From: Hydrolagus affinis
Lineage: Eukaryota
Assembly (NCBI GenBank): GCA_012026655.1
Contig: JAAILG010001781.1
Coordinates: 1-61,942 of the forward strand
DNA length: 61,942 bases
Reading direction: 5' to 3'
The notes below the pieces were generated by a model. It saw only the letters and a list, made by a program, of their open reading frames with translations, had not been told where the DNA came from and did no database searches. This document shows positions 6,446 to 61,679 of this stretch, in pieces; the stretch's first letter is position 1; the number at the start of each line of letters is the position of its first letter. The position numbers were made by a program, and so were the translations under genes.

Positions 6446-6959
6446 ATGTTGCGCATTATTTTGTTGATTCTATCTTAAGATAGTGCATACCAACTGATTT
6501 TTCACGAATGTTGCAGAGCCAGAGTCACCAGTGGAGATGGATTCATGCAATTTTTGTGTTTCTTTGAAAGGCTGATTGAATATGTTCCACAAAATTTAAG
6601 TTGGTAACTCTTAAATCTAGGTTTCAATTTCGTAACATATAAAGGGCATTTCAACCCCCTTTGTGAGGTATGCGACTAACTAGTTACCTTTCAAAATGTT
6701 ATCCAAGTAACCCAACCAAAGCTTTTTCGCAAACAAGTCTGGTTATACAGATATAATCAGCAATATTCTCCAAGAATTTTCCCAAAGACTTTTAATGTAA
6801 CAAAGTAATAAATGCAGTTATGTTTGAAACTGGTACAAAGAGCATTGCATCACTAGACTGATGCGGCACATCTTTCGGTAAATTGAAAAACTACATTGAA
6901 TATACACCAATATCAGTTACTGTGCCGTTTGCTTTATTTGGATCTTGGTTCCATGGAGA

Positions 6960-12763: not shown

Positions 12764-12863
12764 NNNNNNNNNNNNNNNNNNNNNNNNNNNNNNNNNNNNN
12801 NNNNNNNNNNNNNNNNNNNNNNNNNNNNNNNNNNNNNNNNNNNNNNNNNNNNNNNNNNNNNNN
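12764..12863. other. 100-N assembly gap in R1 intron 1
   Basis: Run of 100 N. Confidence 0.99.
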
Positions 12864-15612: not shown

Positions 15613-15908
15613 CTGAGTTGGATTTGGAAACTGTGAATCTGGAGACCGCTGGAATCCAGAGGCTGGTGAGAGACACAGAACAGGAAAAAAACAACCCCGC
15701 ATTACACAGGCAGCTTCTCTTCCAAATACCGCAGCTCAAAACCCTGTAACGACCTTTTGAATCCCTTTCTTCACTGGAATTAATCCCAGTTTTAATTTCA
15801 TTGCCATCTTTACTCCAGGTGAGCGTTATATCTTCAGAGTAAAACGCAGCCGTTTCACACACAAGAGTCAGAGAATCTCTGCGGAATATTTTCAGCGGGG
15901 TCGGGGGA
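15613..15908 (-). pseudogene. R2 orphan C1 pseudo-exon (1-nt deletion at the start, 21-nt internal deletion)
   Basis: Near copy of R0, 296 nt; has 5 G where R0 has 6 G just after the acceptor. Confidence 0.78.
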
Positions 15909-19270: not shown

Positions 19271-21949
19271 TGTTTCTATGCCTTGATTCTGAAAACATCA
19301 TTTGTGGTTGCAAAAACACTCAAACTGAATAGTGATGCTCAAACTTCGTTTTTATGTTTTATAGGTCTTCAGCCTTTGTATTTATAGAATGTGTGGTTAT
19401 TTTCACAGTTTTACTGAAGTGTGGTTTCACACTGCACCCAACACACCAGCTACAATTTCATTAACCCAAAGAAGCAGGAAGTCGGTGCCACAGCAATCTA
19501 CTCTATATCAAATTATTTACATTAACTTATTACAACCCATGAGAACCAGAGACAGACAGAGTGAGTGTTGTCTTTCATAGAATCAGAATTTTACAGTAAG
19601 TATATGATTTCCTTACTCCACAGGGGAAGACAATATTCAGGACATATTGTAACCAACCGTTGTGTTCAGATATATATTTCTAGATATATTTTTAAATGTA
19701 CCCTTCATGTTGGTAACAATAACAGCTTCAACGACAATAAACTTACATTTGTATAGCATTTTTAACGTTGGAGGGGATGTTAACAAATAAAGAACTTAAG
19801 AATATAAGAATGTGCGCGGCGAAAGAAGAGCAAGGAATGTCTAGTTTGCCTTCCAACAATCCAAACATCTCTTGACATGTTGTGTTCGAAACTATATACA
19901 GTATCCCGAGATAGTATTCCTGCTTGAAACAAACTGTACTTTCTGCTCCCAGCTCATGGTCACTCAAGGAGCTGCAATGTTACATTTTTGTTAAATGTTT
20001 TCAGATCCTCGCCATACCAGAAATATGCTATATAGTAGACCCTCGCAGAACGCAGGGTAAAATCGTGTTTGGTAAGCTTAATAAATAATGGGAAAAAAAG
20101 GGGTATGCGGAATCCATGCTCAGGCTGTCCAACCTCAAACCTTCAGGCACATCCACACCCGACCAACGCAAGGTGTGTACTGAGGCTGGCTACACCGGCT
20201 GGCCCGCTCTCCCCGCTCGCCACTCTCCGCGCTCTCACTGACTCACTAGATAGTAAAACAGCACCTTACACTACCACAGCTTAGTTAAATTATTTTACCT
20301 TTGGTCCTGGAAGTGTTAGGAGACTCTCTCTCTCTTCTGTTTACCACGCAATGCCATCAGGTTGCTCCGAGGCCGAGGAACCATCGGACTGCGGCAGGAG
20401 CTGACGACATCCTCTCAAGTGTGCGGTGCGCGGGAAACAAACTGCACTTTTGCAGCTCATGGTCACACGAGAAGCTGAAATGCTACATTTCTGTTAAATG
20501 TTTTCAGATCCTCGCCCTACCAGAAAGATGCTATATTTGTGTAAGTGGCATTCCTATAGAATCTGTACTGAACCCTTCACCTGGAAGCAGTCACGATATT
20601 TTAGCTGCCCAACGTCAGAGTAATATGAATTATAATTATTATATGTGTGTTTCTCTCATATGAAGGTTTTCGGCGTCACATCTAGGTATTTGTATGAGTG
20701 ATCAACTTGTATTTATTTTTCCTTCACTTCAATAAATGAACTGTAGAGTGAGAAAACTACAGCATACAGTACAGTACTGAAGTGCTGCATTAATTCCTTT
20801 CATCACCAGTTGGTCAAGAGCGATGATAATAATGATCTCCCGATTTGATAAACGGGTTATCACGCTTTGAAATCTGGTAATGGCATTTCTCAGGATTTAA
20901 TGTACTTTCTGATGCGTCACAGCAGGGGAACAAGGTAGTCAATTTTTGCAGAAAATTCTTGCAGAAAGTCATGAAAGAAATAATTTAAAAGAAAACAGAA
21001 ATCGCTGCGAGTTCTGGAGAAGGGTCGTGGACCCGAAATGTTTACTCACTTTTCCTTTCTCCATAGATGCTGCCTGACCTGCTAAGTGGTCCCAGCGATT
21101 TATGTTTTTGTTTCAGATTTTCACGTTTTTTCATCAATAAAAAGATAATGTTTACCCAGGGTCTTTCGCTAGGAAACCGGGAGAAAATCACTTCTGTTTT
21201 TGAGTATCAATGTAGGATATTTTACCTACAGCTGAGCAGATAAAACCGACCATAGGTAAAAGTTTCACTCGCTCCCTCATTACAGGATTTTTCCTGAACT
21301 GCTCTTGTCAACATTCAACCCATAATCTTGTGACTCAGCTACCAGAGTGTTGGGACAAGCTGACACTAAATGCTCGTCCTTGCATTTGACCGAGTGTCTT
21401 TATGAAACAGAAGTGTCTTAAAACACATTGCTGATAAGTTACCGAATTTATTTTCAAGCAAGCTAATGTTCCTTGGCAGACAAAATGCGCAATTTATTCA
21501 ACATTTTCATTCAAAACAATGCTTCGTGCACAGAATTTGATATTAATCTACCCTAACATCTCCTCCCTCCATAGGCTGGGGATCATCCAGAAGTCTGCAG
21601 CCCATGCCCAACCCATATATCAAATCACTTTATTATTTTAAAAACCTCAATCAGATCATCCTTCAATCTTCTGTACTTAAGGAAATAGAGAATTAAGATT
21701 TGGGAATGGAGAACAGAGGCATGGGGTTAATAGTGTCCGAAGTATATCAATCTGGTGGAGAATCACTTCGGATACTCAGCCTTTTCGCGGGAGCACATGT
21801 ATTAACTTGTTTCTTTATGCTACATATAGTGAAGATTTTTTTTCTCTTTTGCTCCATGTCACATAATCTAAGAAATCGGTGTTTGACCAATATCTGACTG
21901 AGTATCTCAGGAATCCATGTTTGTTTTATGCTCCACAGTATGCAGCAGG

Positions 21950-24299: not shown

Positions 24300-25745
24300 A
24301 GACATAACAATGATTGGATAAGGCCTGATACCTCTCCCTCAAAATCCTTTTCTCTATCGTCCCCCCAAGCCTCTACCACCTTCCTCTCAGATCTCTCCAC
24401 CCTCTTGTCTTCCCTCTCCCTTTGCTTTCAATGCCTCCTCATCTTAGGTGATTTCAACCTCCACTTCACCCAATCATGTTCCACCACTGGAAACGTTTCC
24501 TCATACCTTGACTCGCTTAATCTATCCCTCCAACAACAACAAGAACAACAAAATTACATGTGTATAGTGCCTCTCACGTCAGGAGAACATCCAAAGGTGC
24601 TGGACAGTTACTCCTTCAGACTCAAGCTGAGGGCAGGGATGTAGGAGGGGAGGGGAATAGGGGGTATAAGGAGTTGCTGATGGGTCGATCAAAGGGAAAA
24701 GTCTGGAGGCTAGACTTGAAGGAGGCCAGGAAGGAGGCAAGGAGGAGGGACTTCGGGATGGCATCACCCCGGGGTCTATCCTTCACCCCCTATGTTTTGA
24801 TATCTAATGCTTCCCCTTGGTGACATCATCCACAAGCATGGGGTCAAGTTTCAAATGTATGCAGATGACACCCAACTACAGCTTTCTGCCTCTACCCTCA
24901 ACTCCATAACTATAGCTGTCCTGACAGACTTCCTGTCAGACATCAAGTCGTGCATGAGAGCTAACTTTCTAAAGTTGATCATCAACAAAACTGTAGCCTT
25001 CCTGATTGGCGTGCATCAGCATCTTCCCACACCAAGCACCGGCAGCTTCAACCTCCATGGTTGCACACTCAACCTCACTAAGCCAGTCAGAAACCGAGGT
25101 ATCTTGCTCGATCCTCAACTATCTTTTCTCCCCTACATCCAAGCCATGACCTGCTCTACCTTCTCACACCTCTGCAATATTGCCCAACTCTGCCAATACC
25201 TCACTCCCAAGGCCGCTGAAATCCTCATTCATGCCTTCATCACATCCCAGCTTGACTTAGCCAATGCCTTTCTTGTCAGCATTCCCAATTCCACCCTCCA
25301 TAGGCTGTGGATAATCCAGAACTCTACAGTTTGTGTCCTTAACCACCTCAAGCTTTCCGACCCCATCTCACCCATCCACCACACAGAGGATTCAATTCAC
25401 GATCCTCAAATTCAAAGCTTGTCATGGCCTCACCCTACCCTACCTCTGCAACCTCCTCATCTCTGACCAACCACTCCGCAAAGCAAGCTCTGACCTGATT
25501 CATATCCACCAACCAACCCACCCACCATTGGCGGGTGAACCTTTAAACCCTCTGCCACCAAACTCTGGAATTCCATCGCTTTGTCCTTCCCCTCCCCCTC
25601 AAGTCCCACCTCAAGACCCTCCCCTTTGACCATGCCATCGGTCACCCCCACTTTCCCTCCACCCTCAGCTTGGGTCTGAAACAATATGACTTCCAACACC
25701 TTGGAGTGTCGTCCTAATGTGAAAAGCACGAAATAAATATAATAT
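24300..25745 (+). mobile_element. L2 LINE remnant (endonuclease piece, RT and tail) with an internal antisense tail
   Basis: LLILGDFNLH; YADDTQL; AEILIHAFITSQLD. Confidence 0.85.
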
Positions 25746-26419
25746 TGTTGTTGCTGTTATCCAATTTTAATTGATAAATATACAGGTGTTCAAAGTAAAT
25801 GCACTGTACAGTTCAAATTTCATGTGTAGTGAGCCAGGACAAAGAAGAAAATGTGCAGAAATATATACCTTTATGTTGTTACGTAAACAATGCAATATGG
25901 TGCACGATGTCTACAACTCTTTGAGAAGCAATTAATAGAAAAGCCGCCAATGGATGGAAAATGTTAAAATCAACTATGCAATGCTGTTAATGTGACGGAA
26001 TGAATCTCTGACAATGGAATTATTTATTGATATTTTCAAAAACAGCAGAATCAATAGAACTTTAGCACTTAGTTGTTTCATGCTAGGTGTTGTTTTTTCT
26101 TAGCAGTTCAATGACACTTGCTACAACTACTACCCATGCTATGACTTTTCTACTGTGTTATACGAATTGCGCCATATTTTGTTGATTCTCTTTTAAGGTA
26201 GCGCATATCAACTGTTTTTTTTCATGAATGGCGATAAAACAAAGTATCAAAGGAGACCTATTCATGCAATCTATGTTATTTTTCATTGAAAGGCTGTTTG
26301 ATAATGTTGCACAAAACAGAAGTGCCTAACTTTTACATTCAGGTTTTGGTTTCATAGCAGTTAACGTGTAATTCAAACCTCCTGATGAGGCATCCAAATT
26401 ATTACCATACAGTAACAAC

Positions 26420-26750
26420 AACAGCAAAATTACATTTGTAGAGCACCTTTCACATCGGAAAGGAACCATGGAGCCGGGCAAGGGAGGCGGTGATGGGATC
26501 ACAGAACCTGGTGCAGGAGAGGACACGAGCTACAGAGTTTTGGATGATCTGCCGCTTATGGAGGGAAGAGTTGTGGAGGCTGAGAAGGAAAGAGTTGCCA
26601 TAGTCAAGCCTAGAGGTGGCAAACGCATGTATAAGGGTTTCAGCAACCTGATGGGTGAGGCAATGACGGAGATGGGCGATGTTGCGGAAGTGATGCAAAG
26701 CGGTACTGGTCATGGCATGGATATGGGGGAGAAAAGACAGCTCAAGGACA
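26420..26750 (-). mobile_element. L2 RT fragment
   Basis: AETLIHAFATSRLDYGNSFL in ORF 26450..26818. Confidence 0.8.
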
Positions 26751-27021
26751 AACAAGGCAATGTAATTACAATAGTTATATTTAAGAAAGTTAGCAGATGG
26801 GTACAAACATTTTTTCACAATTAAGTATGGTTATATAGGTACGGTGAGCAATAACTTCCAATAATTTTCCTGAACACATATTATTTAAAAATCTAATAAA
26901 TGCAGTTATGTTTGAAATGGGTGGAAAGAGCAATGCAGCACAAGACTAACATGGCACATCATTTGGTAAACTTAAAAACTACATCTAATATACACCACTA
27001 TCAATTTCTGTGCCTGTTACA

Positions 27022-27195
27022 TTATTTGGATCTTGGTTCCCTGGAGATAGCAGCTGCTCCTTCTCTATAATTTCTCACATGGATCTTTGCATACTCTGTA
27101 TTCTTAACAGTACTTTTAGGTTTTCCTGGTTTTTTGGAGGGATGTAAATCCAGAACAGTATACATCACATTGTTCCCAGCTGTTCTTTGATTGGT
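27022..27195 (-). CDS. R3 terminal exon with ITIM VMYTVL and ITSM-like TEYAKI
   Basis: ttttcag|ACC, 57 codons then a stop; lies inside ORF 27022..27207. Confidence 0.82.
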   Translation of the reverse strand, partial: TNQRTAGNNVMYTVLDLHPSKKPGKPKSTVKNTEYAKIHVRNYREGAAAISREPRSK

Positions 27196-27652
27196 CTGAA
27201 AAGGCAAAGTTTGACAATTTCATCAATTTATTTTACTTCAGTTTTCAAAAATCTACTTTGATATTTGTCAATTATTATCTGCAGCATGGCATGCCCCATA
27301 CATCCTTTGATAAAGACACTGCTCCTCACAGAACTCAGCTAAACAGAATCTACTAGCCACAATTCCGTTCCATATTGGATTAGTTGCGCATCAACAGCAA
27401 ACTTGCGCTGGGAGAGAAAAGTGAAAATCCACCAGGTAAGCAATTGTTCAAATAATCTGGACTAGAAGTGTTTTTGTTTTGCTAAAGAATGGTGGATTGC
27501 CACAGTCATTTCATAGCCCAGGTCAGAGTCAGACGGAGAAAGGATCAGAGGAGAAAGGAATATTAACCACATAAATATACAAACTAGATTATGATAAACA
27601 TTGAAGTGAGATCCACTATATAAAATGTAGCAGGTACTATTCCGAGACATAC

Positions 27653-27760
27653 CTGGGCATATACAACCGTCTCATCTTGTTTTTTAGGTGTTGGAGTTTT
27701 TTTGCGATTCAAATCCATTTTGGCGTAAGTCACCAACTCATTCCCTGCTCCCTGCAGTGT
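27653..27760 (-). CDS. R3 second tyrosine-motif exon (VTYAKM; VVYAQ)
   Basis: ttttacag|ACA...CAG|GTATGT, 108 nt, phase 0-0, open. Confidence 0.78.
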
Positions 27761-28189
27761 CTGTAAAACAGAATGTGGTACAGTGTTGCCATCACTGGTC
27801 TGGAGATTCCTTGATAAGCATTGATCAAAATGCTATCAAGAATCAGTTTAAAATATTCAACATATAGCTTCCAGATATTGTATCAGTGAGAATCATCCAG
27901 TGTAGCAGCTGTTCGATGATCTACCGAAATATGTGATGTGCATTTCTATATATGGGTGATGTCCCAGTGCCTCATAGATTGACAGACACAATAACTAGTC
28001 TTATACAAAAAAACTATGTAAGTATACAGTGGCAGATTGTCAGCAGCATGTAACAGCACAAGATTAACCACAAAAATGTACAAACCATCTTACAGTAAAT
28101 ACTGAATTGAGTTCCATGCTTTACTGAAACAAAATAAATAAATTTGATAGAAAAGTTTTCTGTTTTCATTTTGTGTTTCTCAGATATAC

Positions 28190-28299
28190 CTGGACAAACA
28201 CAGTCCTTTCTTCTTGCCTTTTATATTTTGAACTTTTCTTGGAACTAATCAAATTCAATGTGACATAAGCCACTGGTTCATTTCTGCTCCGTGCTTTGC
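28190..28299 (-). pseudogene. R3 first tyrosine-motif exon, frameshifted (110 nt versus 111 nt in R1)
   Basis: GCAGAAATGA versus GCAAAGAATGA in R1 gives a premature TGA; the second motif also has Y>F. Confidence 0.75.
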
Positions 28300-28693
28300 C
28301 TATCAAACAGAATGTAATCACAACAATAAAAATACATTACATTTTGGTAGCAACTTTGAGGTCACAATGAAGTCCTAAAGTGCTGATAGATTATTGTCTC
28401 TACCATTCTGTAAATTGTTCTGTAAGGGCTAATCAGAAAGCCTGTGAGAATAAATATTTTCACCAAAGTTCATAATTTTACCAAATATTTTATAAGCAGA
28501 GTATTATTGGGTAATCAGTTATCAATTGCATGAAACTGGGTACCTCATTTTAAATAATACACTGAGTCCACACGGATGCACATAAGGAATATAGTCAAAG
28601 TGGTCTCATTTCTTAATGATGAACAATATCTTTCCAGTACAAAAATTCTGTTTTCAGGAGAAATATCTGCTGAAATGAATTTTAACAATGTAC

Positions 28694-28737
28694 CTGTTCT
28701 TCACCATGACCCAACATGTTCTGGTTTCTGCGGGAAC
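28694..28737 (-). CDS. R3 cytoplasmic linker exon (GSRRNQNMLGHGEEQ)
   Basis: ttctaag|GT...CAG|GTACAT, 44 nt, phase 1-0. Confidence 0.62.
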
Positions 28738-30420
28738 CTTAGAAGGAAATTCAAAAAATTAAATATTCACTTAAGTTTACGTAAATATTTTAAAATATAT
28801 TTTGGTTAGGTAGGCCAAATAAAAAGTGATTCTCAGGCCACAAACTGCCAGAGCCTGGGTCTAAAAACTTAATTGTCATCCAGCACAAAATTGCCTTTCT
28901 AATGTGCATGAATAATTTTAACTTCTTTACACAACACCACCTTCCTACCTAACTTCTCTTATTCCTTCTTGCACTGCTGCCCAAGTGCTCTCTGGAACAC
29001 CATTCCCGAGTGCCTCAGATTAATTCTTTCACATGCATGCTTCAAATTGTTGATGGAATAACTGAGAGAATAGGTAATTTGTAGTATTGAATATAAAACA
29101 AAAGTGGTAATGTTAAGATGCAAAATCGTTAATTAGACCACAATTAGAATAATGTGTCCAGGATTCTTAACCTTGGTGTGCCCTATGAGCAGATACTTTC
29201 ACCTTGGAATATAGAAGATGGTGCGGTGACTCACTAGAGGACTAAAATTATGAGGGTTTTGATAGCACCAATGGAGACTTTATTTCCAATAGTAGGATTC
29301 AGTACCAAGAAGATAGCAGTAGAATGGGAAATTTGGAGATAAGGATTTTTTTTCTTTTCATCAAGAGTAGACAGAGTATTTAGGATATCCAACACCCTGT
29401 TGGTGTGATCGTTGTGGTATAATGTACATTCACTTTCATAAGTGTACAGTACTCAAAGAAGTAAGCCATAACTTTTCAAATGCAAAGGTAATGGGGCAAA
29501 GCAGGTAAATTGGGATTGAAAGCATTGCTGAAAAAAAGCAGCCCAAACACAATGAATTTCTTGTGTGCTGTAAATTTGTATGGTTCTATCCAGCTCTAAA
29601 TGTACCTATTTGTCTTTCGTTTCAGGGATCTTTCCTGTCCCCACATCCATTTTATACCACAACGTTCATTGGCATTCCATTTATGAAGTGCCATTAATTT
29701 GGAGTTTTCCACAAGGCATGAATAACACTATACATGCTTCTCTATTCCCTATGTTGAATATTCCCCTATTCCTTGTTTCCCAATAAAAATAATAACAATA
29801 CTCATGGTTATAGCATTTTTTGCGTCTTCTAGACAACTCAAATTGCTTCACAGAATATACTGTAAAGTACCTGTATATTTGTGGGCGAAAAGCAGCAGCC
29901 AATTGTGCACAGCGATGTCCCACAAACGCTCGAGGTTATTATTTGTTTTTATTTCAAGGAAAATTATCCCAGAAACGTAATCCGTCATTCAACTGACAAC
30001 CAGGTTTCTATTTAGGTTTCTATTTCCCACTCTCTCCTGCTCCATGCCTGGCTATTGACAATAGAATGTAAACGTCTTTGTCACGGGTGAATGGGACGTG
30101 AATTATTTCAAGAACGAACACTAGGGGCTGAAGGACATTCTCTGCAGTTCAATCTCAACAGATTTTAGACACGGGTTGTATGGAAATTTCTGATTACATG
30201 TTCGACTAAATGATTACAGGGTGAGTTTTTATGAGGACATTTGCATTTTGCAATCAATCGCAACACACAAATCATTTGTATAACTTGAAAGGATAATAAT
30301 AATTCTTGCACTTGATACGGGTCAGTTTCTTTTTCATTGTCACCTGTAGTCCATGAAACAAATTATTCTATTCAACTAAACATTGACAAATAACTTACAT
30401 TAAAGAGGAATACATCTTAC

Positions 30421-30522
30421 CTTTCCGTTGGTATAATTGCCATTGTTTCCCAATAATGATCAAAAGCAACAGTAATATCAGCCCTTCAACTACACATCCA
30501 GCGATCAGTTGACGGCCAATCA
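30421..30522 (-). CDS. R3 exon 4, TM exon (VIGRQLIAGCVVEGLILLLLLIIIGKQWQLYQRK)
   Basis: cttgtag|TG...AAAG|GTAAGA, 102 nt, in frame; paralog of the R1 TM exon with a 12-nt deletion and G>E. Confidence 0.82.
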
Positions 30523-31003
30523 CTACAAGAACAGCATAAACTGAACGTGTTAGTGACTCCAGCAATGAGGTACACTTTCATTTTGGAGGTTACCAAACAA
30601 TGAAAATTTAACATCCAATTTGAAGCAAGTATTTATCATATAATAACAACAAAACAGGACATACCACGTTAAAATATGTACATTTGATGCCTTCAGTTCT
30701 GATTGAGCAGAGTCTCAGTATTGGAATATTGTTAAAGACAATTTAAGAGACGAAAGAGTAAATTCAAAGAGGGACATGTAAAGTTGAATGTTATTGCACC
30801 AATATTTCAATGCAGTATTTTGCTAGAAAATGATATGATTATAATTGTCTGTGTAAGTACATGTAACTAAACTTTGGATAACAATTTAGTTTTCATCAAT
30901 TGTGTTTGGGAACATAACAGCATATAAATAAATTTAAATATAATTTCCAGCAATGAGGTGTTTAACAAACAATGAAAGGCAGCAAGAGAAGTAGGCATCC
31001 TAC

Positions 31004-31324
31004 CATCCAACCCTGTATTGGGTTCAGAAACGGTGTAACTGGCAACCTCTGGATTCCGAAGGCTGACATGAGATGCCAGACAGGTATAAACAACCCCGAT
31101 CTCTGGAGGCTGTATCACTTCCATAGAGCTGGAAACTTCGTGAAGCCCATTGGAATTCTTGTCGTTCTTGAAATGAATCCCAGTTTTAACTTCATTGGCA
31201 TCTTTAAACCACGTGAGCATTATATCCCCTGGGAAAATTGCAGCCGGTTTACACACAAGAGTCTGAGAATTCGCTGAATCTCTTTCAGAATCTCTGCGGA
31301 CTATCTTCAGCGGCCTCGGGGGGA
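31004..31324 (-). CDS. R3 exon 3, C1-set domain
   Basis: ccgacag|TC...GATG|GTAGGA, 321 nt, open; both Cys and the Trp are present. Confidence 0.9.
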
Positions 31325-32239
31325 CTGTCGGACAGAGAGTGGAGCAGAATCTTATACTTGTCATCAGTTGGAATATAAAACTTTATTCTAATTTGAATTG
31401 TATAATAACTATTTCCTTGGCACATTATAAAATGGAATCTGGATTCTAAAGGCGCGAATGTGATTTCGCAGCTTTGAAAGTGTTGTTGCATTTGTTGGGA
31501 AACATGTGTTCAGTTTAGGAGATATATGTACAGTCGCCTTCGAGGGGCTAAAGAAGACAGGGGTACATAATCTTAACATTGTGGCTCACATGATGTTAAA
31601 CCGTTCTTATTACATTGAATATTGTGAAGTTGTGAAATCCAATCCCACGACTGGCCTTAGATGCAGAATTAAGGGGAATATACAAAAGGGAGACAGAACA
31701 TATTTGTAAACAATTTGGAGAGAGGTGAAGAAACTGGAAAAAGCTCTGCCACCATTCCAGGGCGACTACAACCCGCATTTATATAGTGCCCTTCACGTGA
31801 GATGGTAACGTTAGATCCAGATTTAAATAGAGATTTCACCATCAATAGAGAAATAAGCCAAATGTCCCCATTCACACCAACATTAATTTTCTTCCACTGC
31901 ATTTCTCTACATTTGAAAAGATTTCAACTGATTTACAAAAGATAAAACAGATTTCTTCGAAACCATTTTGTGGCTGTTTGTGGGACATTGTTGTGTGTGA
32001 AATGTTCAAGTTTTGTAAAGTGTTAATTTTTATCTTTCGTATTAACAATAATTATCCTTGTTTTTGATATAGTATCTTAGACATTGTTAAGGTATCTCAA
32101 CTCGTAGCACATAATATACTATGAACAGGATTGATTGTGTACTTGTGGGCAAAATTCAGAGAAAATATGTAAATCAGTCATTTATCATTGCCTGGACAAT
32201 ATGTGAAAGATATTCTGATGAGTATTCATCGCCACAATA

Positions 32240-32590
32240 TTAATGCTTATCTTCGAGGTATTCACAGTGAGAGAACCGCCTCAAAGCATTTAATTGGATT
32301 CACTGTAAAGTATGGTGAGTTTGCATTTCTGTATGAGATCAGAAACACAGCAGCCAGTGTTCCACACAGCAATGTACCACCAAACAGTCATGAAGTGAAT
32401 GAGAAAATTTAACTCATTAGCCAGAACACACCGAGGAAGAATTTCTCTTTTGCTTTTGATTAGTACCGCGGGATCTGTAATATTCACCTAAACAAGCAAA
32501 GGGGACCCGAGGTTAACGTCTCCCCCAGTGTGGAAGCCACAGAGCGCTCCTCAGCATCGCAGTGAATAGGGAGCAATCCGAGATAATCGG
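32240..32590 (-). mobile_element. Degenerate Deu-domain SINE; paralog at about 58330-58690, others near 21200, 47330, 53150 and 60650
   Basis: The reverse strand gagacgttaacctcgggtcccc...cattgctgtgtggaacactggctgc resembles the DeuSINE core as I recall it; not database-checked. Confidence 0.55.
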
Positions 32591-33144
32591 AATAAATGCC
32601 ATCAGGATACAATAAAATATCAGATCGATTAATAATAAAAAGAGGAATCCTTGTATTTGATATAGCACTGATCACCTCTCTATAAATATAGATTTACTCT
32701 ATATATGTGGGTTAAATCCAGCAGGCAATTTCACACAACAGTGTAAACAAACAGTCGTGGATTGAAATGACCGATTTATTGTTGTTTTTATTCGCCGAAT
32801 TATTAACTAGGCGTGTGGAGTAAGGAAACTTGGCCAAAGTTTTGCGCTGCCTGGAGCTGAACCCTGGACACTCGCTTCTAAGGCGAATGCTCTAGCCACT
32901 GAGCTACAGGACTCCAGCCTATAGTTCCAGTCACGGTGGTATGAAGGGACAGACATGTTTGAAAACCTTGTATAACGCAATGATGGAGCAACTCATCTTC
33001 CCGCTGTGTTCCGTTTCATAAATTTGCCGGCTCAAATCAGCGCAATAACAGAGGGCAAAACTTAATAATTTACTCATATTGATTCCAAAATGCAACACCG
33101 CATCACATTTGAACATTTTATGGTTCTAATATATTAACACTTAC

Positions 33145-33450
33145 CTTGTACAATTAACTCTGATCCAGCTCCATTTCCTGCTACTTTCCCCTTACGGAAC
33201 ACTGCACAGACATAGACTCCTGAGTCGTGCAAAGTCACACTTAGCAGCTGGAATGTATTGGAATCGAATACTTTCCTGTGAGAGGGTATTTTATGTAAGT
33301 ATTCACCCTCATCTTGTTTCCACCATTGAAATGTCAAAGCTGAACTTTGTTGATCATTCCCAATCTCGCAGGCGAATTGAACGTTTTCACCTTGCAATAC
33401 TGTCTGTTCTGGAGGATGTTGAATCACACTCACCGACGCATCAGCAGCAA
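33145..33450 (-). CDS. R3 exon 2, VJ-type V domain
   Basis: ctgacag|TT...CAAG|GTAAGT, 306 nt. Contains FAC...QWWK...DSGVYVC and NGAGSELIV. Confidence 0.92.
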
Positions 33451-33643
33451 CTGTCAGGAAATAAATTAATCTATAATTACTGATTATCGAGAGGAAAAAG
33501 CGCGACAAAGTAATCGGAGAGAGCGAGACAAAGGTGGGAGAAAGTTAGCAGGAAAGAAAGACGGAAGTATTCACTGTACACATCTTGAAACTCCTTATCT
33601 ATATTGTTTTGTATTGAAACTGTGCTGTAGTAAAATGACACAC

Positions 33644-33689
33644 CTGTGGCTATTAGAGAAAGATAGAGGATCACATCACTGGCCATCAT
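33644..33689 (-). CDS. R3 exon 1, signal peptide (MMASDVILYLSLIAT)
   Basis: ATG at 33689, donor ACAG|GTGTGT, 46 nt, phase 1; paralogous to the R5 leader. Confidence 0.75.
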
Positions 33690-33759
33690 TGTGAGCAGTT
33701 GTTGAGCCTCACACTACACCAGTTACTGTAGCAAACGTTTGCTGATGGTTTAATATGAA

Positions 33760-33790
33760 AGATTTTGCAATGTGGTTTGACTTCCTGTTT
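33760..33790 (-). promoter_or_regulatory. R3 proximal promoter: ETS (33779-33787), RUNX TGTGGTT (33771-33777), C/EBP-like TTTTGCAAT
   Basis: Motifs read directly from the sequence; position conserved with R5. Confidence 0.5.
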
Positions 33791-36700
33791 CCGTGATTCA
33801 GAGACGGGTTGGATGCGATTGGCAAAGAAAGTTGTGCAACTGTAGAAAATTTAATCACTCCTCAGATCGGCAGGAAAGAAGAGGGTGAAATATTACTATT
33901 GACCGTCTTTTTTCCTCATATTGCAGTAGTTCTTATGTTTCATGGAAAACATTCACGTTTATAATAACAACAACAAAATTACACTTGGAACACGCCTTTC
34001 GTGTTAGGAGGAGTAGCTATTTGATAATAACGCTGACACACTGTGCTAAGGAAACGACGTTCTATTCAGTGCAATAATAATAATACTACAGACAGACCCC
34101 GCTTAACATCGCAGTGTTGTTCTTGCTTAGCGCGATTCGAAACTCAACCATGTTAAGCGAATACATTTTTCTCATAAGAAGGAATGTAAAAACTGGAGTA
34201 AGATTCTTTGGGATATTTTTCATCAAAATTTTACTCGCTCCCTTCCCGGCTCAATCATTCGCTGGCTGACTGCCTGAGCGGCTCACTCACTGGCTGCCGC
34301 CTGGCTCTCTCTCTCGCTGGCGGCCTGGCTCACTCCCAGGTCCTAGTGAAATCTGACAAATTTCGTGAAAGGACAAGGAGTGCGTGGAATGATCTTTAAT
34401 GCAAACTCAAAAATTGGATTAATTTAAAGTTATGAGTAAATGTACAACATTTCATCTGGAAGCTGTGCAGTTCACCATTGAATGCTTGACCATATTGATA
34501 GTCTTCCAATATTTTAAGCATTCTGAGACGCCGTCCGGCATGCAGGGCATGTTGTTGTTATTTTATTTCATGAAATTCAAGATCATGAATACAAATTTGA
34601 TGATTTCAGGAACAATATATGTTCCTTTGTGTTCAGCATATTCAGTGACCTGGGACGTCCTCCCTACGTGAAAGGCCATCTAAAAATGTAATTTTGTTGT
34701 TGTGTTCTAACGAAGGGACATAGACCCGAAATGTTGATTCACTTTCCTTTCTCCATGATGATTTGTGGGACGCTGCTGTGCCATGTTTCGTCCACAAATA
34801 TACAGTCAATTCAATTTACAGTATATTCCGTGAAACGCTTTGAGACGTATAGACGATGCGACAAGCGCTATATCAAAGTGCAAAGATTATTATTATTATT
34901 CTTAGTTGAATCAGTGGAGAGGTAATTGTTTGACATATATTGCAGGGAGTTGATGCCACTGAAAAGTCCAGCATTGTCCATGCACAAATGGTATTCTGCA
35001 TTCAATGATAACTTGTGACTCCCCCAGCCAGTTTATTAAACGTGAGCAGCCCACAGCACTGATGATTCTATCTTTGCTCGTAGCATTCAAAGTAAGAATA
35101 ATAATAATAATGCCTGCATTTGAAATAGCGCTTTACACATCTTATCGACATCTCAAAACGCTTCACAGAATACCTTATACTGTAAAGAGAATTGACTGTA
35201 TATTTGTGAGCGAAACGCGGCAGCCAATCGCCAAACATTCGTGGATTGAAATTACCAATTTTATGATTGGGGTTTTTTTTGACGGATTATTATTATTAGT
35301 TGTGTGGAGTAAGGAAACTTGCCCAAGGTTTCGCCCTGACCTGCCTGGATTCGAACACAGGTCTCACGCTTGTAAGGCGAGCGCTGAGCTCCTCAGTTTT
35401 ATTGAAATGTTTCGGTTTCGATTCAGCGCGTGGATAATATTACTCGTGTCTGGCATCCTTGTAGATTATTTCAAAAAGAATCCTCTGTGTAGCGGTAAGT
35501 CATTAATTGATTTGGGATGCTGCCGACCTGAATTTTAAAATCGTGGCTGAGTGTAGAATAACTGACCTAAAGTGAGCTGTTGAAACATATTGAGGCTGTG
35601 CGTTAGAAAGTGAAAATGAAGAAATTGTACTGGCAAGTTGAAGCAATCACTGCTGTGTGGTGGATCGCACCCAAAATATCCAGAAGCAATTTCTTTATTT
35701 TGTAAAGAATAATATGAATATTTTGTTGTTGAAAATCTGACATTTTCACGTATATTCGAGACCCCCCAATCTTTAAATATCAGATCACTATTTGATTAGT
35801 ATGACTTTGAACACATTATAATAGCGGTGTCAGATGAAGCGTCAACCCTAATGATAATTGATATTTTTCTTCAATGTTCTGATCAATTATTGACTGTGAT
35901 TGTCATTTCTTTCCTTTCTGATTGCTGAGTTCCCAATCAATCTGATTTGACAATCATCTGACAAAATGTTCTCATAACGTTTTGCAAAATAGCTTTTTCT
36001 TTCCATAAACTGTTGGATTCTAATATAATCTACATAAGGATCAAATGGTGCCGAAAACGTGATTAATGCGGAAACTCCAAATGTAGCGGAATTCACAGGT
36101 TTGCGTCCGCGCTGATGGAGGAAGTGGAAGTGGGAAGCGGGAAGCGGGTTAGGGGCGAAAGATAACGGAAGGCAGCTTGACATCGCAATTTTGTATGAAA
36201 TGCAAGAATCCACGAAATCAAAAGGCTAATTATGCAACAATACAGTTTTGATAAATATATCTGTTATTATAGGAACAAAATATGAGACATCAATGATAAC
36301 AGGAACATTGAAGAACTTGAAGAGAATCTCCAGTATACGTCCAACTGCAGTAAATAAATATAAATAATGTTACACACGAATACTAATTGTAGATTCCTTG
36401 TGCCTATAAATTACCAAATGATGCAAAATAACTGCGGCTCGAATTCAATATATTATACTGTATTTGCAGATTTTAGAACATAGGACAGGCTTTGCATAAC
36501 TGTAAGCGTTTCCAATATTAACATGAACTTTGTATTTTAATTATTTTAAGTAATAGGTTGAGAACATTTCACTCAAACTCGAGCGGTTAATATGTCTGCG
36601 TATAACTTGGATTTCGATGAAACTCAGTGGGAGTTGTCCACCCCGAGTTTGTGACGGGCTGTAGGAGATTGTACCTGCAGCCATCAGCAGCCACACAGAG

Positions 36701-49708: not shown

Positions 49709-49827
49709 TTACCTTTCAAGTTGTGAGATTTTAACATGGTCAACAATGAAGATGGTCAACACTATCACTACCAAGAAACAGAATATAAACCGTAAAATCG
49801 TCTCGTTCTCCGACATTCCACAACAAC
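49709..49827 (-). CDS. R4 exon 4, TM exon with Arg and a short tail (GCCGMSENETILRFIFCFLVVIVLTIFIVDHVKISQLER*)
   Basis: Acceptor ttttctag|GT is in phase with the C1 donor. The hydrophobic stretch is preceded by Arg. AG|GTAAG reads either as a donor or as AGG TAA. Too short for the ORF track. Confidence 0.75.
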
Positions 49828-51576: not shown

Positions 51577-51882
51577 CACAAACAGTTAATTGCGACCCAG
51601 TTCCATTAACCGCTCTATTACCCGGAATGACCAGGCTACAGTAATAGATCCCAGAGACCTGGATGTCTGCAGCCAGGAGATTGAAGAAGGCGCTTCTTGA
51701 ACCATTGACACCAAATTGTTTCGTTTGATCCTCTCTGAGGAATCCATTCTCTCCCAGCTTCCACCAGTGAACTCTCACACTCCTGGTGACAGGGAAGCCA
51801 CAGGAGAACGTCGCCTTCTCACCTCTGTTGACAATGATATGATCCGGTTGCTGTGTCACTGTGAACACTGTACAGTCAGCAG
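51577..51882 (-). CDS. R4 exon 2, VJ-type V domain
   Basis: ctgacag|CT...TGTG|GTAAGT, 306 nt; 6 nt differences from the R1 V exon. Confidence 0.93.
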
Positions 51883-54679: not shown

Positions 54680-55920
54680 ACAACTTTGATTTATATAGCT
54701 CCCTCCACACTGGACGGCATCTCAGAGCGCTTCACAATAGCAGATCCCAGGACTGAGCCAGGGGCAGGGGTAGAAAGGTAACCAAAGGCACAGTCGAAGA
54801 GAAAGGTCTTCAGCTGGGAACTGAAACTGAGAAAGGAGTGGGCAAGACGAAGGTAGTGAGGAAGGGAATTCCAGAGTCTCGGGGCATAGTGGCTGAAGGC
54901 CCAGCCGCCAAGGGTGGAGCAGAGGATTCAAGGGACATGGAGGAGGCCAGACCCAGTGGAGCGAAGGCAATGGGAGCTGGTTTGAAAAGAGAAGAGGTCA
55001 GAGAGGTAGGGGGGTGCAGAGGAGTGGAGGGATTTAAAACAAGGGTGAGGATCTTGAAGTCGATCCTCTTGGGGACAGGGAGCCAATGAAGTCTGGTAAG
55101 GACTGGGGTAATGGAGGAGTGAAGTTTGGTGCGGGTGAGTATGTGGGCGGCAGAGTTTTGGATGAGTTGTATTTTATGGATTGTGGTGGTGGGGAGACCG
55201 GCGAGGAGGGCATTTGAATAGTCCAGCCTTGAGGTGACGTAGGCATGGACCAAGGTTTCAGCGGCTTTTGGGGTGAGATATTGCCGGAGACAAGCAATCC
55301 ATCGGAGGGTGGAAGAAGGCGGTGCTGTGAGGGACCGAATGTGGGGGAGGAAGGACAGTTGGGGGTCGAACCTGATGCCAAGGTTGCGCACAGGTTCAGA
55401 GAGTTTCAGGGGGAGACCAGGAAGGTCTAAACTCCAACACAATTCCGCAATCCTATCAACCCCACTCTTGCCCGATTCCACTGGCTTCCCATCACCCAGA
55501 GGAATCAATTCAACATCCTAGTGCTCAAATTCAAAATCCTCCATGGTCTCACCCCACGCTTCATCTGCAACCTCCTAACCCCCTGCCAACCTCCCCACTC
55601 CTCTGCTCAGCAGGCTCTGGCTTGCTCCATAACTCCATAAATCCCAACCCACTTGCCCCACCATTGGCGGTTGAGCCTTCAGTCACTCTGTCCTACTCTC
55701 TGGAATTCCATCCCGCTCTCCCTACACCTCATCTTCTCTCTAGCCTCCTTCAAGTCCTCCATCAAGACCCTGCACTTCGAGAATGCCATCAGTCAACCCA
55801 AATCCGTCCCTTTCCCTCCAACCTCCACTTCACCGACCCCCAGCTCGGGTTTGAACCAATTTGACTGTCCAGCACCTTGGGATGACATGAAAGGCTCTTT
55901 TCAAGTGCAATTTTGCTGTG
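54680..55920. mobile_element. Two L2 fragments pointing away from each other (minus about 54680-55440, plus about 55440-55920)
   Basis: ORF 54810..55508 contains AETLVHAYVTSRLDYSNALL and HWLPVPKRIDFKIL. Confidence 0.85.
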
Positions 55921-57070
55921 GTTATCCATTATTTATTTTATAAATATATAGGGGTTCGAATTTCATGTGTAGTGAGCCAGGACAAAGAAGATGTGCAGAA
56001 AGGTAACCTCTATGTTGTTACATAAACGATGCAATATGGTGCACCAATATGGTGTCTGTAGTCATTAACAACTCTTTGAGAAGCAATTAATAGAAAAGCC
56101 GCTAATGTATAGAAAATGTTGAAATCAATTGTGCTCTGTGTTTAATCTGAGTGAATGAATCACTGACACTGGAATTATTTACCTGTATTGACATTTTCAG
56201 ATATAGCAGAATGAATAGAAATTTAGCATTTAGTTGTTTCATGTTTGTTTGTTTTTTTAGTGGTTCAATAGCATTTGAACTGTTCAACGCCCATGCCATG
56301 ACTTTTTCACTGTGTTGTATGAATTTCGCCATACTTCATTGATTCTCTTTTAAGATAGCGCATACCAACTTTTTTTTAAAGAATGCTGAAAACACAGAGT
56401 GATTAGGCAAGACATATTCATGCAATCTATGTTTATATTTTATTGAAAGGTTGTTGGAATATGTTGCACAAAACAGAACTTCCTAACTTTTATATTCATG
56501 TTTTGGTATAATAGTAGTTAAACACCCAATTTGAAGGGAAGTATTTATCATTCAATAACAACAAAATAGGATATACATCAAAAGATGTACATTTCATGCC
56601 TCAGTTCTGATTGAGCAGAGGTCTCAGAATGTAATATTGTTAAGGACAATTTAATAGAGTAAGAGACGAAGGAGTAAATTCATAGAATGACATATAAAGT
56701 TACTGGAATCTTATGGCACAAAAGGAGGCCATTCGGCTATTTGAGTCTGCCAGCACTTTAAAATGTGCAATTCAATCCCGCTCCCCAGCTCTCTCTCCAT
56801 AACCGCGAACACCCATCCTCTCCATATTAATGTCTACCTCTCTTGTAAACTTCAACGTCATTGTATTAATATTTCAATGCAATATTCTGCTTAATACAAC
56901 TTTAATTTTCTGCATCAATAAATGTATATATATATTTTGGGTTACAATTTAGGTAATACCAATTGTGTTTCGGAAATTACCAGCGGATAAACGAATTCAA
57001 ATACAATTTCCAATAACGAGATGTTTAAAAAACAACGAAAGACAAAAAGATAAGTAGGCATCATGCCATC

Positions 57071-57278
57071 TAAAATACTACAGATGTTAGAAATCTGAAA
57101 ACAAAAACAGAAATCGCTGGGAACACTCAGCGGGTCAGCCAGCATCTATAGAGAAAGGAAAAGCGATTCAACGTTTCAGATCTGAGTTCTGACAAAGGGT
57201 CCTGAACGAGAAACGGTGACTCACATTTCCTTCCTGCAACAATGCTGCCTGACCTGCTGAGTGTTCCCAGCGATTTAT
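57071..57278. mobile_element. Palindromic MITE-like repeat; partial copies at about 1260, 15100, 20990, 34705, 40066 and 49100
   Basis: 35-nt inverted arms (57111-57145 and 57242-57276, 2 mismatches); flanking 11-nt direct repeat. Confidence 0.75.
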
Positions 57279-57606
57279 ATCCTACCATCCAATCCTGTGT
57301 TGGGTTCAGAAACGGTGTAATTGTCAACCTCTGGATTCGTAAGGCTGACATGAGATGCCAGACAGGTATAAACAACCCCGATCTCTGGAGGCTGAGTCTC
57401 TTCCATAGAGCTGGAAACGTTGTGAAGCCCATTTGAATGATTGTTTTTCCGGAAATTAATCCCAGTTTTAATTTCATTCCCATCTTTAAACCACGTGAGC
57501 GTTAAATCCCCCGGGAAAAACGCAGCAGTTTCACACACAAGAGTCAGAGAATTTGATGAATCTCTTTCAGGATCTCTGGGGAATATCTTCAGCGGAGTCG
57601 GGGGCA
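57275..57606 (-). CDS. R5 exon 3, C1-set domain, probably terminal (...NTGLDGRI*)
   Basis: cctccag|TG, 321 nt to the GTAGGA donor at 57285. Read-through stops at TAA 57275-57277. No TM exon was found downstream. Confidence 0.85.
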
Positions 57607-59282
57607 CTGGAGGACAGAGAAAGGAGCAGAATCGTGTTACTTCTAATCAGTTGAAATATAAAACGTTATTCTAATTTGAATTGTATAATAATTATTTGCT
57701 TGGAACATTATAATCTGGTCTGTAATGCCACGAATGTGAACCCTTCTTATCACATGAATATTGTGAAGGTGTGAAATCTAGTCGCACGAGTGGCCATAGA
57801 TTCAGAATTAAGTGGAATATTTTAAAGGAAGACAGTACAGTTGTAAAGAATGTGGAGATCGGTGAAGAAATTTGAGTAAACGTTCTGCCACCATTCCAGA
57901 GCGACAACAACCCACATTTATATAGCGCCTTCAGGTAGGATAGTAACGTTAGATGCAGATTTGAATAGAGATTTTGCCATCAATAGAGAAATAAGTAAAA
58001 TATCCCAACATTCTCACCAACATTAATATACCTCTACTGTATTTCTATAACATTTCAACTAATTTACAAGAGGTACAGCAGGTTTCTTCGAAACCGTTTT
58101 CTGGCTGTTTGTGGGATATTGTTGTGGGTGGGTGAACTGTTCCGGTTTTGTAAAATGTTAACTTCTGCCTTGAATATTAATAATAATAATAATCCTTGCA
58201 TTTGATATAGCATTCTACATGTTCATAACATATCTAAAATCGCTGCACATGATACACTGTGAACTGGATTGATTGTGCACTTGTGTGCAAGATACGAGCA
58301 ATCTTGCACACAATCTTGCTCTGAGGAGCAATCTTCATCACAATAACAATGCTTATCTTCGAGCTCTTCACAGTGAGAGAACCGCCTCAAAGCATTTAAT
58401 TGGATTCACTGTAAAGTACGGTGAGTTTGTATTTCTGTATGAGATCAGAACACAGCAGCCAGTTCTCCACACAGCAATGTACCACCAACAGTCATGAAGT
58501 GAATGAGAACATTTCTCTGGGAAACTCATTAGCCAGAACACACCGAGGAAGAATCTCTCTTCCCTTGTTGAATAGTACAGCGGGATCTTTAATATTCACC
58601 TGAACAAGCAAAGGGGACCCGAGTTTAACGTCTCCCCCAGTGTGGAAGCCACAGAGCGCTCCTCAGCATCGCAGTGAATTGGGACCAACCAGGGACAATC
58701 TGAATAAATGCCATCAGGATTGAATACATATCAGCTAGAGCAGTGATGATAATAATAATAATAATCCTTGCATTTGGTATAGCGCATTTCTCGTCTTCTA
58801 GACGTTTCAAAGCGCTTCACCGAATATACTGTAAACTGAATTTACTGTATATATGTGGGTGAAACGCAGCAGTGAATTGCACACAGCAGCGTCTAACAAC
58901 CAGCTGTGGATTGAAATGACCAATTTATTATTGTTTTTATTATTATTAGGTGCGCGGAGAAAGGAAACTTGTCTATTGATTCGTCCTGCCAAGAATTGAA
59001 CCCAGGATTCTCGTGTGTAGCATGAGTGCTCTAGCCACTGAGCTCCTGGACTCCAGACTAAAGTTCTCGTCACAGTGGTATGGAGCGACATACACGTTTG
59101 AAAGCCTTGCATAGCGCAATTATGGAGCAAATCAACTTCCCACTTTGTTGTGTGTCATAAATTTGCCGGCTCAAATCGTTACAATAAGAAAGGGCAAAAC
59201 TTAATCATTTACCTTATCGATTCCAAAATACAGCAATGCATCACCTATGAACATTCTATGGAACTAATGTATTCACACTTAC

Positions 59283-59588
59283 CTTGTACAATTAAACGTG
59301 AACCAGATCCATTTACTGCTACTTTCCCGTGATGGATCACTGCACAGACATAGACCCCTGAGTCTTGGAAAGTCACATTTAGCAGCTGGAATGTGCTGGT
59401 AGGAAATGTTTTCTTGTTATCAGGTTTTGTGGGCAAGTATTCACTCTCTCCTTGTTTCCACCAGTGAAATGATATATCTGAAATTGCTTGATTATTGTAA
59501 ATCTTGCAGCAGAATTTAACGTTTCCACCTTGTAATACTGTCTGTTTTGGAGGATATTGAATCACATTCACCGATGTATCAGCAGCAA
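59283..59588 (-). CDS. R5 exon 2, VJ-type V domain
   Basis: cttaacag|TT...CAAG|GTAAGT, 306 nt. Contains FCC...HWWK...DSGVYVC and NGSGSRLIV. Confidence 0.92.
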
Positions 59589-59781
59589 CTGTTAAGAAAT
59601 GAATTAACCTATAATTAGTGATTATCGAGAGGACGAAGCGCAATAAACTAAATAGAGAGAGGGAGAGAAAAGTGGGAGGAAGTTAGAGGGAAAGAACGAC
59701 GGACGAATTCACTGTACACATCTTGAAGCTCCTTATCTATATTGTTTTGTATAGAAACTGTGCTGTAGTAAAATGACAGAC

Positions 59782-59836
59782 CTGAGGCTACAATCCCAAA
59801 CAGAGAAAGATAGAGGATCACATCACTGGCCATCAT
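59782..59836 (-). CDS. R5 exon 1, signal peptide (MMASDVILYLSLFGIVAS)
   Basis: ATG at 59836, donor TCAG|GTCTGT, 55 nt, phase 1. Confidence 0.75.
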
Positions 59837-59907
59837 TGTGAGCAGTTGTTGACGCTCACACTGAACCAGTCACTGTAATAAACTGTTACTGATAGTTTAA
59901 TATGAAA

Positions 59908-59934
59908 GATTTCGCAATGTCGTTTGACTTCCTG
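59908..59934 (-). promoter_or_regulatory. R5 proximal promoter: ETS (59926-59934) and C/EBP-like TTTCGCAAT
   Basis: Aligned with the R3 promoter. Confidence 0.5.
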
Positions 59935-61679
59935 TTTTCGTGATTCAGAGATGCGGTAGATGCGATTGACAAAGAAACTTGTGGTTTTCAATAGAAAACT
60001 CCTCAGATCCGCAGGAAAATAGAGGGTTGAATATTGCTATTAACCTTTTTGCATATTGCAGTATTTCTTACTTTTCATGGAAAACATTTACGTTTATAAT
60101 AAGTAACCGTATGAGAATACAACTGACATACAGATCTATGGAAACGGTGTTCTATTCAGTTCAATAATAATATTAATCATTGCATTAATATAGCGACTTA
60201 CCACATCATGGGGATGTTTCAAAACCCGTCATAGAAAATAAAGTACAACAACAACAACAAATTCACTGTACATGTTGTGGTGGAAACCGGAATAAGACAA
60301 AGGCTAGTTTGTTTTAACCTAAAACTGATGGCTTTAAAAATGTTTTGTATCACCTTTTGGCGCCCCCAGGAGAATATGACAAGACCAGTGAAAGGACAAC
60401 AGTGCGTGAAATGATCTTTAACACAAACACAAAGATTGGTTCATTTAAAGTTATGTTTTAAAGCAAAATCCTTTGATGACTCGCTTATCACACATCGAAA
60501 CGTAGTGGCTGAAAGCGTTTCTCAGTATTTAATGTACTGACAGGAGGAGAACAATACACTTTAGTACAGCAATGTACCCACAATCAGACATTAAATAGAT
60601 TACCAAATTTACCAAGAAAAGTTTGCCGACAACACCAACAGAAAATATATTCTGTTTTCCAGCGGAGATGTAGGATATTTTATACCCTGTCTCGGGTATC
60701 AGTTTCACTCGAAAGATTGTATACGCACATTAGGTCATGTTCTTGAAATATACTCGTCAAGATTGAACCCCAAATACTCTGAATTAGCAGCCAGAATGCT
60801 GAGACAAGTTGACACTTATTGCTCATGCTAGCATTTGACCTGGTGCCTTCATGAAATGAAAACGTCTTAAAACTCATTGCTGATAAGCTATTGACGGTGA
60901 CTGCAAGCGAGACCGGTAGAGAAAAATCACAGTCGAATCAACAGTATAATTGTTTTAAAAAATTGAGTGCAAAGATTTTTACATGAATTGGAAAGCAATC
61001 CCCAAATACACAGATTAAAATAGTCGCTCTATTCTGCAACCAGCCGAATGTGATGCAATCAGGCATAGGTCGCGACTTGACAATGTCAGGAACATTTACT
61101 TTAGAACCACTTGATGGCATCACTTCTAACTACCGATGATGTCAGTTATTCACAGTTATCTCTCTGAAAGTTGCTCTCTGCAATTCATTTGAAGACTCGG
61201 TTCAAACCTGCACTGATACCGTTATGCAGTGAAACAACAATCATTTGATTTCTGCAGCGCCCGTCACAAGGATTGGGTAAAAGCGTGGCCACCGATGTAG
61301 GAAATGAGAGGACATGAAACACACCGGAGCCGGGAGCCAACGAGCAGTGGCTGCGGGTAGCGGGGGGTGAGCTGGGCGGGGAGATGGGGACTGATGGTCA
61401 GGACATGCAGGGTTAGTGCAACAACAACAACAACGACGACGACGAACGCCTTTCACGTCCGGAGGACGAGGATCTTGATGTCGATCCGTTGTGTCCTCAG
61501 TACCAGTGGAGCCTGGCAAGGGTTGGTGGGAGGTAGGGAACGTCGATATGGAAATTTTCCCGATTAAATATATCGATGGGCTCATATCGAGATGTACTGA
61601 AATATCGATTTTTTCGTACTGTGCATGCGCGCGCATTCGGGGTGCGCGCGCATTCGGGGCCTATCTTCTCAGGAGGTAA

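Follow-up and report, generated by a model that had tools for sequence, protein, structure and literature searches.

R5, a gene of the chimaera Hydrolagus affinis and the sister of R3, an inhibitory receptor gene of SIRP-like type, has lost every membrane-anchoring and signalling exon in what is, on alignment with its paralog, one deletion, and the remaining exons are predicted to encode, on their own, only a secreted 230-aa leader-V-C1 chain. As the membrane and signalling exons are all lost, the product of the gene would be limited to a free V-C1 chain or to nothing.

The receptor cluster and the deletion in R5

The window, by which we mean the whole stretch of 61,942 nucleotides that was analysed (contig JAAILG010001781.1), is a tandem cluster of Ig-superfamily receptor genes. 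Exon-by-exon tblastn and reading of the open frames place all the copies discussed here on the minus strand, and every gene begins with a leader exon followed by a single V-set and a single C1-set exon, all of phase 1-1. R2 has its V exon at 12733-12428, C1 at 11678-11358, TM at 10815-10681 and tyrosine-motif exons at 8365-6937. R3 has V at 33450-33145, C1 at 31324-31004 and TM at 30541-30419, and its tail consists of a juxtamembrane exon (~28738-28694) and three exons with two tyrosines each (~28297-28190, 27763-27650 and 27213-27025), with the stop at 27025. R4 has its leader at 52098-52041, V at 51882-51577, C1 at 50991-50671 and a TM exon of a different type at 49827-49712; the latter (..ILRFIFCFLVVIVLTIFIVDH..) resembles that of a short-tailed 265-aa elephant-shark member. 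R5 has leader, V and C1 exons, and no family-type TM or tail exon was found from its C1 donor (57286) to the R4 leader (52098); unlike R2, R3 and R4 it has exons neither for a TM segment with an ITIM/ITSM tail nor for a short-tailed TM segment. Inhibitory, activating-type and TM-less copies stand side by side in the cluster.

The family occurs in cartilaginous fish, and in a full HMMER scan the nearest proteins are elephant-shark (Callorhinchus milii) entries at 55-65% identity, with names assigned automatically, for example 'signal-regulatory protein beta-1-like' or 'tyrosine-protein phosphatase non-receptor type substrate 1-like'. In the tree R5 is nested within the SIRP-like V-C1 receptor family annotated in Callorhinchus milii (support 97/97) and is sister to R3 (99/99), the two forming a lineage-specific pair in which neither has a one-to-one elephant-shark orthologue. 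We found no paper on this family in the cartilaginous-fish literature; the UrIg paper (PMC12227049) describes a different gene, of V-C1-C1-C1 organization. Elsewhere in the window, on the minus strand, a pair of C1-like exons (1946-2275 and 15611-15907) belongs to another subtype; the two have in common insertions of 5 nt and 1 nt that recode ~15 residues while the frame stays open; they carry an elephant-shark-type donor (..SNSG/GTAATT), and one also has a 21-nt deletion. On the plus strand, opposite to the cluster, an open stretch at 35407-35487 is like the TM exon of the R4 type and of the elephant-shark short-tail members (..ILVDYFKKNP).

R5 (57739-60102) is colinear with R3 (31599-33967) at 79.5% identity, beginning upstream of the leader and continuing through intron 2, and the colinearity extends across the C1 exon into intron 3. 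The earlier note on this DNA had R5 following R3 intron 3 down to about 56520, and so it does, but two R5-specific insertions, at 57074-57278 and ~56723-56843, interrupt the match; the second lies within the remnant of intron 3 (56522..57073, minus), which is homologous to R3 30607-31010 at 79.9% identity. By BLASTN, R5 56518-56722 matches R3 30607-30802 (80.5%, E 4e-46) and R5 55489-56521 matches R3 25376-26364 (71.5%, E 2e-162), and in a three-way alignment the switch from R3 intron 3 (30607) to the R3 3' flank (26364) falls at R5 56518-56521. The same note had ascribed the absence of the TM and cytoplasmic exons to a deletion of about 4.2 kb, with breakpoints near 56520 in R5 and near 30605 and 26360 in R3, and the alignment bears out both the event and its position: a stretch of 4,242 bp in R3 (26365..30606, minus) is without counterpart in R5. 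This interval runs from 65 nt upstream of the acceptor of the R3 TM exon to ~660 nt past the R3 stop and contains five exons, namely the TM exon, the juxtamembrane exon and three ITIM/tyrosine-motif exons, the last with the stop. Beyond the junction, R5 55489..56517 (minus) corresponds to the R3 3' flank (25376-26364) and partly to R2 6439-6624 and to L001:20506-20813 of the elephant shark. A short motif is shared at the junction, as had been claimed, but it is TTAAC and not TTAA (R5 reads TTAAAC, both R3 partners TTAAC); the join is consistent with microhomology-mediated end joining, which we infer to be the mechanism.

The polarity of the event was read from L001, the Callorhinchus milii locus of protein P0170, which served as outgroup and aligns with R3 at 70-77% identity along introns as well as exons. 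In R5 a match to L001:13305-13487 is followed directly by one to L001:20506-20813, without the ~7 kb between them (L001:13488-20505) and with the same breakpoint. As L001, colinear with R3, retains the interval, the event is by this comparison a deletion derived in R5 and not an insertion in R3. We rejected the idea of an intron block with special conservation at the breakpoint, as introns align locus-wide at a similar 70-77%.

The remaining exons and the predicted secreted chain

The leader exon of R5 (59782..59836, minus) begins with an ATG at 59836 and comprises 18 codons and 1 nt up to a phase-1 donor (CAG/GTCTGT); its length is that of the elephant-shark leaders and is ancestral, whereas the R3 leader is shorter by a 9-nt deletion. 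The V-set exon (59283..59588, minus; 306 nt, phase 1-1) carries a J-like NGSGSRLIV motif and is bounded by the acceptor AACAG/TT and the donor CAAG/GTAAGT. The C1-set exon (57286..57606, minus; 321 nt, phase 1-1) has the acceptor CTCCAG/TG and the donor GATG/GTAGGA, identical in R2, R3 and R4. Pfam assigns the first domain to V-set and the second to C1-set (E 1.4e-10), and the best matches of the C1 domain among solved chains are the IgA1 heavy chain, UrIg2 and SIRP alpha/gamma. Both Cys pairs are present (FCC...YVC in V, LVC...YTC in C1) together with the core Trp residues, and an extra, unpaired Cys in the V domain adjoins the canonical one. No disabling change was found in the 682 coding nt or at any of the four splice sites, and the start codon and the promoter-side region are also intact; of the marks of an unprocessed pseudogene (stop codons, frameshifts, broken splice sites) the remaining exons show none. 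The earlier reading of open leader, V and C1 exons with intact splice sites and both Cys pairs holds at the level of sequence.

With the TM exon gone, the C1 donor is orphaned (57275..57285, minus; G/GTAGGA), and read-through adds G-R-I and then TAA. The resulting frame of 230 aa is leader-V-C1, ends in ...NTGLDGRI and has no hydrophobic C-terminus; it thus combines a signal peptide and an intact ectodomain with the lack of a TM segment or GPI signal. We propose that in this sister copy of an inhibitory receptor gene transcripts would continue unspliced past the orphan donor, their frame closing after the three added codons, and that polyadenylation of the message would follow within 0.4-0.9 kb, for instance by way of the AATAAA at 56444. 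As the stop would lie in the last exon, the mRNA would escape nonsense-mediated decay. The product would be a secreted chain of 230 aa with five N-glycosylation sequons, a soluble paired-receptor member binding a target of its own V domain, not necessarily the ligand of R3. That R5 is a working secreted gene, with its product made and used, is a possibility that in our judgement falls just short of being probable.

The earlier note had seen in R5 a soluble V-C1 protein that could compete with R3-type receptors. The first half of this agrees with the structure of the gene, which leaves a soluble product only, but the proposed competition does not follow, for the V domains diverge at the ligand-facing loops. 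They differ at 37 of 102 residues (64% identical), with changes at 8 of the 13 BC positions and at 11 of the 18 of the C'-C'' segment, so that these two segments hold 19 of the 37 differences, and the net charge of the V domain is +3 in R5 and -4 in R3. Such a pattern suggests diversification of the binding face and argues against a ligand common to R5 and R3, short of settling the matter. As the differences lie mostly in ligand-facing loops, competition for the ligand of R3 is not indicated, and R5, if secreted, may have a target of its own.

The 205-bp repeat insertion at 57074..57278 sits 9 nt into the intron, and its target-site duplication of ~12 nt copies the C1 donor region; the TAA stop falls on the boundary of the insertion. 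Its near-perfect palindromic core (57112-57275) is a predicted hairpin with a stem of ~75 bp (dG -107 kcal/mol, z -12.9), and the would-be 3' UTR begins with this stem. The insertion is MITE-like and has kin copies at ~21009-21120 and 1268. In intron 2 a tRNA-like SINE head (58981-59052, minus) belongs to a repeat that is present many times both in the window and in the elephant shark, and an Rfam search of the R5 region gave only a sub-threshold tRNA match at this place (28.5 bits vs a threshold of 29).

A canonical AATAAA (56439..56444, minus) lies 75 nt beyond the deletion junction and is followed by a GU-rich stretch, where R3 has AATGAA and R2 AAAGAA, and ATTAAA hexamers occur at 56906-56901 and 56655-56650 (minus), in the region past the stop. 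We rejected these hexamers as evidence for a poly(A) site and regard them as permissive only, as their density is that expected by chance (0.94 and 0.69 per kb). Retention of the ancestral site was likewise rejected. The ancestral poly(A) site probably lay in the lost interval, because R2 and R3 have in common a conserved stretch after the stop in which R2 carries ATTAAA ~150 nt downstream; the two genes put the likely site at most ~170 nt past the stop, inside the deleted interval.

Constraint, reads and alternative explanations

As a neutral yardstick we took intron 2, in which R5 and R3 differ by K=0.193 with 22 indel events in 1,618 aligned nt, 18 of them frameshifting; the reading frame of R5 survived a lineage-specific divergence of ~10% on its own side. 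In simulations the 682-nt frame and all four splice sites stay intact with P=0.001 under neutral drift of R5 from the duplication onwards, and with P=0.03, 0.09 and 0.47 under neutrality for a half, a third or a tenth of that time. Since survival of the frame is improbable under long neutrality, R5 was under constraint for most of its history; as the deletion itself is undated, this does not imply constraint after it.

The dN/dS ratio of R5 vs R3 is ~1 in pairwise comparison (V 1.22, C1 0.77). When changes are polarised with R2, R4 and the elephant shark, 8 synonymous and 31 nonsynonymous ones fall on the R5 branch and 10 and 34 on that of R3, and the ratio is again ~1 for both. As intact R3 gives the same value, the ratio is no mark of a pseudogene in R5, and it cannot tell relaxed from diversifying selection in either gene. 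R5 appears to be the less derived sister, with a terminal branch of 0.19 vs 0.28 and 17 polarised amino-acid changes vs 27, the difference in the latter count not being significant (binomial p=0.17). The two sisters also differ in their N-glycosylation sequons, of which R5 has five (N71, N93, N158, N165 and N198) and R3 none, with three each in R2 and R4. Three of the R5 sequons were gained in C1 on the R5 branch, and as three or more would arise by random substitution with P=0.013, the gain is suggestive of more than chance, in a post hoc test that was picked after inspection of the data. The R3 ectodomain (33145-33689 and 31004-31324), with zero sequons and 9 nt gone from the core of its signal peptide, is that of the faster-evolving sister.

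Reads from two single-cell poly(A) runs, one run of unspecified type and one WGS run were examined. In the two poly(A) single-cell RNA runs, sampled at ~14 million reads each, from unspecified tissue and with no positive control, depth was zero on the R5 leader, the V exon and the 5' part of C1, and zero also at the junction region and at the AATAAA at 56444. The RNA reads that did map were all on repeats, and 95% of them continue into unlike sequence; many RNA reads that fall on the arms of the hairpin (57112-57275) stem from repeat copies elsewhere, and the depth in the bin 57258-57454, which covers the rest of C1, is attributed to the hairpin arm at the edge of that bin. Expression of R5 is therefore unsupported by these two runs, which weigh little given their tissue and lack of control. 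A search for R5 protein with a stretch of the V exon sized for the 230-aa chain gave no match, in collections from which Hydrolagus affinis is seemingly absent; the best identities, ~68%, are all to elephant-shark proteins. Run X13, of another organism, contributed two reads only.

A second source of genomic sequence is X1, a set of contigs from a different individual or haplotype that is 2-4% off the window across the locus. Contig depth is even on either side of the deletion junction (~30 and 34), with no bridging contig displayed, and one contig crosses the insertion boundary at 57074, so that this insertion is common to X1 and the window. In the covered part of C1, X1 and the window show four differences, all four of which change an amino acid. 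At 57739 the X1 contigs hold 128 extra nt, where R3 carries 136; the assembled R5 therefore has an intronic deletion at 57739 that another haplotype or individual lacks.

The same data can be read nearly as well in another way, namely that R5 is a recently disabled relic or null allele, with a young and possibly polymorphic deletion, comparable to the human 6.7 kb deletion at LILRA3, and a locus that is silent or makes no useful protein, its exons being intact only through too little elapsed time. We take this to be a real possibility, if one of less than even weight. The zero RNA reads on R5 and the dN/dS of ~1 would be as expected, and for the final 10-33% of the branch the intact frame agrees with neutrality (P 0.47-0.09). 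The intron remnant has taken up two repeat insertions, one of them a strong hairpin just past the donor, and the ancestral poly(A) site has been deleted; moreover, birth-and-death gene families contain many truncated copies. A relic sits less easily with a copy that is more conservative than its intact sister R3, has gained N-glycosylation sequons beyond chance and is without a disabling change in 682 coding nt and four splice sites. That X1, at 2-4% difference, has the insertion at 57074 and even depth at the flanks of the junction hints that the arrangement is not brand new.

R5 might also be the front half of a conjoined gene, its orphan donor being spliced to the R4 V acceptor at 51882 or to the R4 TM exon at 49827 to give a V-C1-V-C1-TM or V-C1-TM protein. 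As all Ig exons are 1-1 the phases are compatible, R4, 4.3 kb downstream, shares the strand of R5, and the R4 V exon, 5.4 kb from the donor, could in principle be spliced in frame; an old elephant-shark model, P0001, in fact joins the C1 of one gene to the V of the next. P0001 comes from older sources only, however, and may be a prediction artefact, three poly(A) hexamers intervene between R5 and R4, and no reads with loose ends were seen at 57286, though there were zero R5 reads overall. We consider such a fusion improbable. Least likely of all, with hardly any weight in our view, is a misassembly at the junction in which 4.2 kb of a complete gene was collapsed: tandem paralogs are hard to assemble and no displayed read or contig spans 56520, but the junction lies in unique sequence whose flanks are merely 70-80% like R3 and so are not mis-joined R3 reads, the only N run of the window is elsewhere (12764-12863), and in the independent run X1 the contigs are equally deep to the left and right of the junction (~30 and 34).

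Soluble members of paired-receptor families

We return to R5 as a soluble receptor under selection, in which one microhomology-mediated deletion removed the membrane and signalling module and extra glycans were gained later; we put this forward tentatively, as something that may well turn out otherwise. Families of paired inhibitory and activating Ig receptors frequently have soluble members, which tune or block signalling, and to our knowledge almost all of those documented are mammalian.

Annotated products of Callorhinchus milii comprise inhibitory forms of ~370 aa, short-tailed TM forms of ~260 aa and V-C1-only forms of 229-256 aa. The genes (e.g. XP_042196405.1, 370 aa) have the same leader-V-C1-TM-tyrosine-motif exon plan as those of the cluster, with C1 domains 55-65% identical to that of R5, and the V-C1-only forms (P0170; P0004, which is UniProt A0A4W3H6B2; and P0157-P0160) read through the same C1 donor. 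P0170, a RefSeq protein of 229 aa named 'immunoglobulin lambda-1 light chain-like', differs from R5 in that its gene retains a good TM exon in the DNA (L001:13815-13916), so that its soluble form would depend on how the RNA is processed, whereas in R5 the exons are physically absent. The P0170 gene has an AATAAA inside the last C1 codons and two decayed tail exons, which show one stop near 19550, one altered frame near 20080 and a loss of tyrosines, and this locus (L001:10001-20200) may be on its way to making only the soluble form through RNA processing. Production of soluble V-C1 chains thus seems recurrent in the family, the elephant-shark cases being gene models.

In mammals the SIRP family combines an inhibitory member, whose cytoplasmic part bears several tyrosine motifs, with a partner of activating type, and it has soluble variants (PMC12975943), D1-only splice forms among them. 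In SIRP alpha, beta and gamma a V domain precedes C1-set domains, as it does in the genes of the cluster; the mammalian ectodomain, however, is V-C1-C1, whereas the cluster genes have one C1 exon each and are V-C1. The SIRP-like naming used here follows automatic database names and implies no orthology to SIRPA/B/G, and no CD47-type ligand is known for these genes. LILRA3 (ILT6) is a soluble member of the LILR paired receptors and is believed to bind, as agonist or antagonist, the ligands of its membrane-bound relatives (PMC10679719). The likeness to R5 is that of a secreted member of an inhibitory/activating Ig receptor family; LILRA3 differs in having Ig domains of other types and no common descent with R5, and its secretion and ligands have been shown experimentally. 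Human LILRA3 has a well-known 6.7 kb deletion, which, unlike the deletion in R5, removes the gene and does not generate the soluble form. Soluble paired-receptor members such as LILRA3 and the soluble SIRP variants are thus already well known, and R5 would add another.

R5 would be the chimaera soluble member that arose by one DNA event, beside an elephant-shark relative that seemingly uses RNA processing, and the pair would show how soluble members of paired-receptor families arise. If R5 is only a young null allele, its deletion belongs to the usual birth-and-death turnover of such clusters. If our proposal is true, free V-C1 chains, antibody-light-chain-like but never rearranged, recur from this old family in chimaeras, and R5 would offer, within one of the most ancient jawed-vertebrate lineages, a simple secreted V-C1 protein that does not rearrange.
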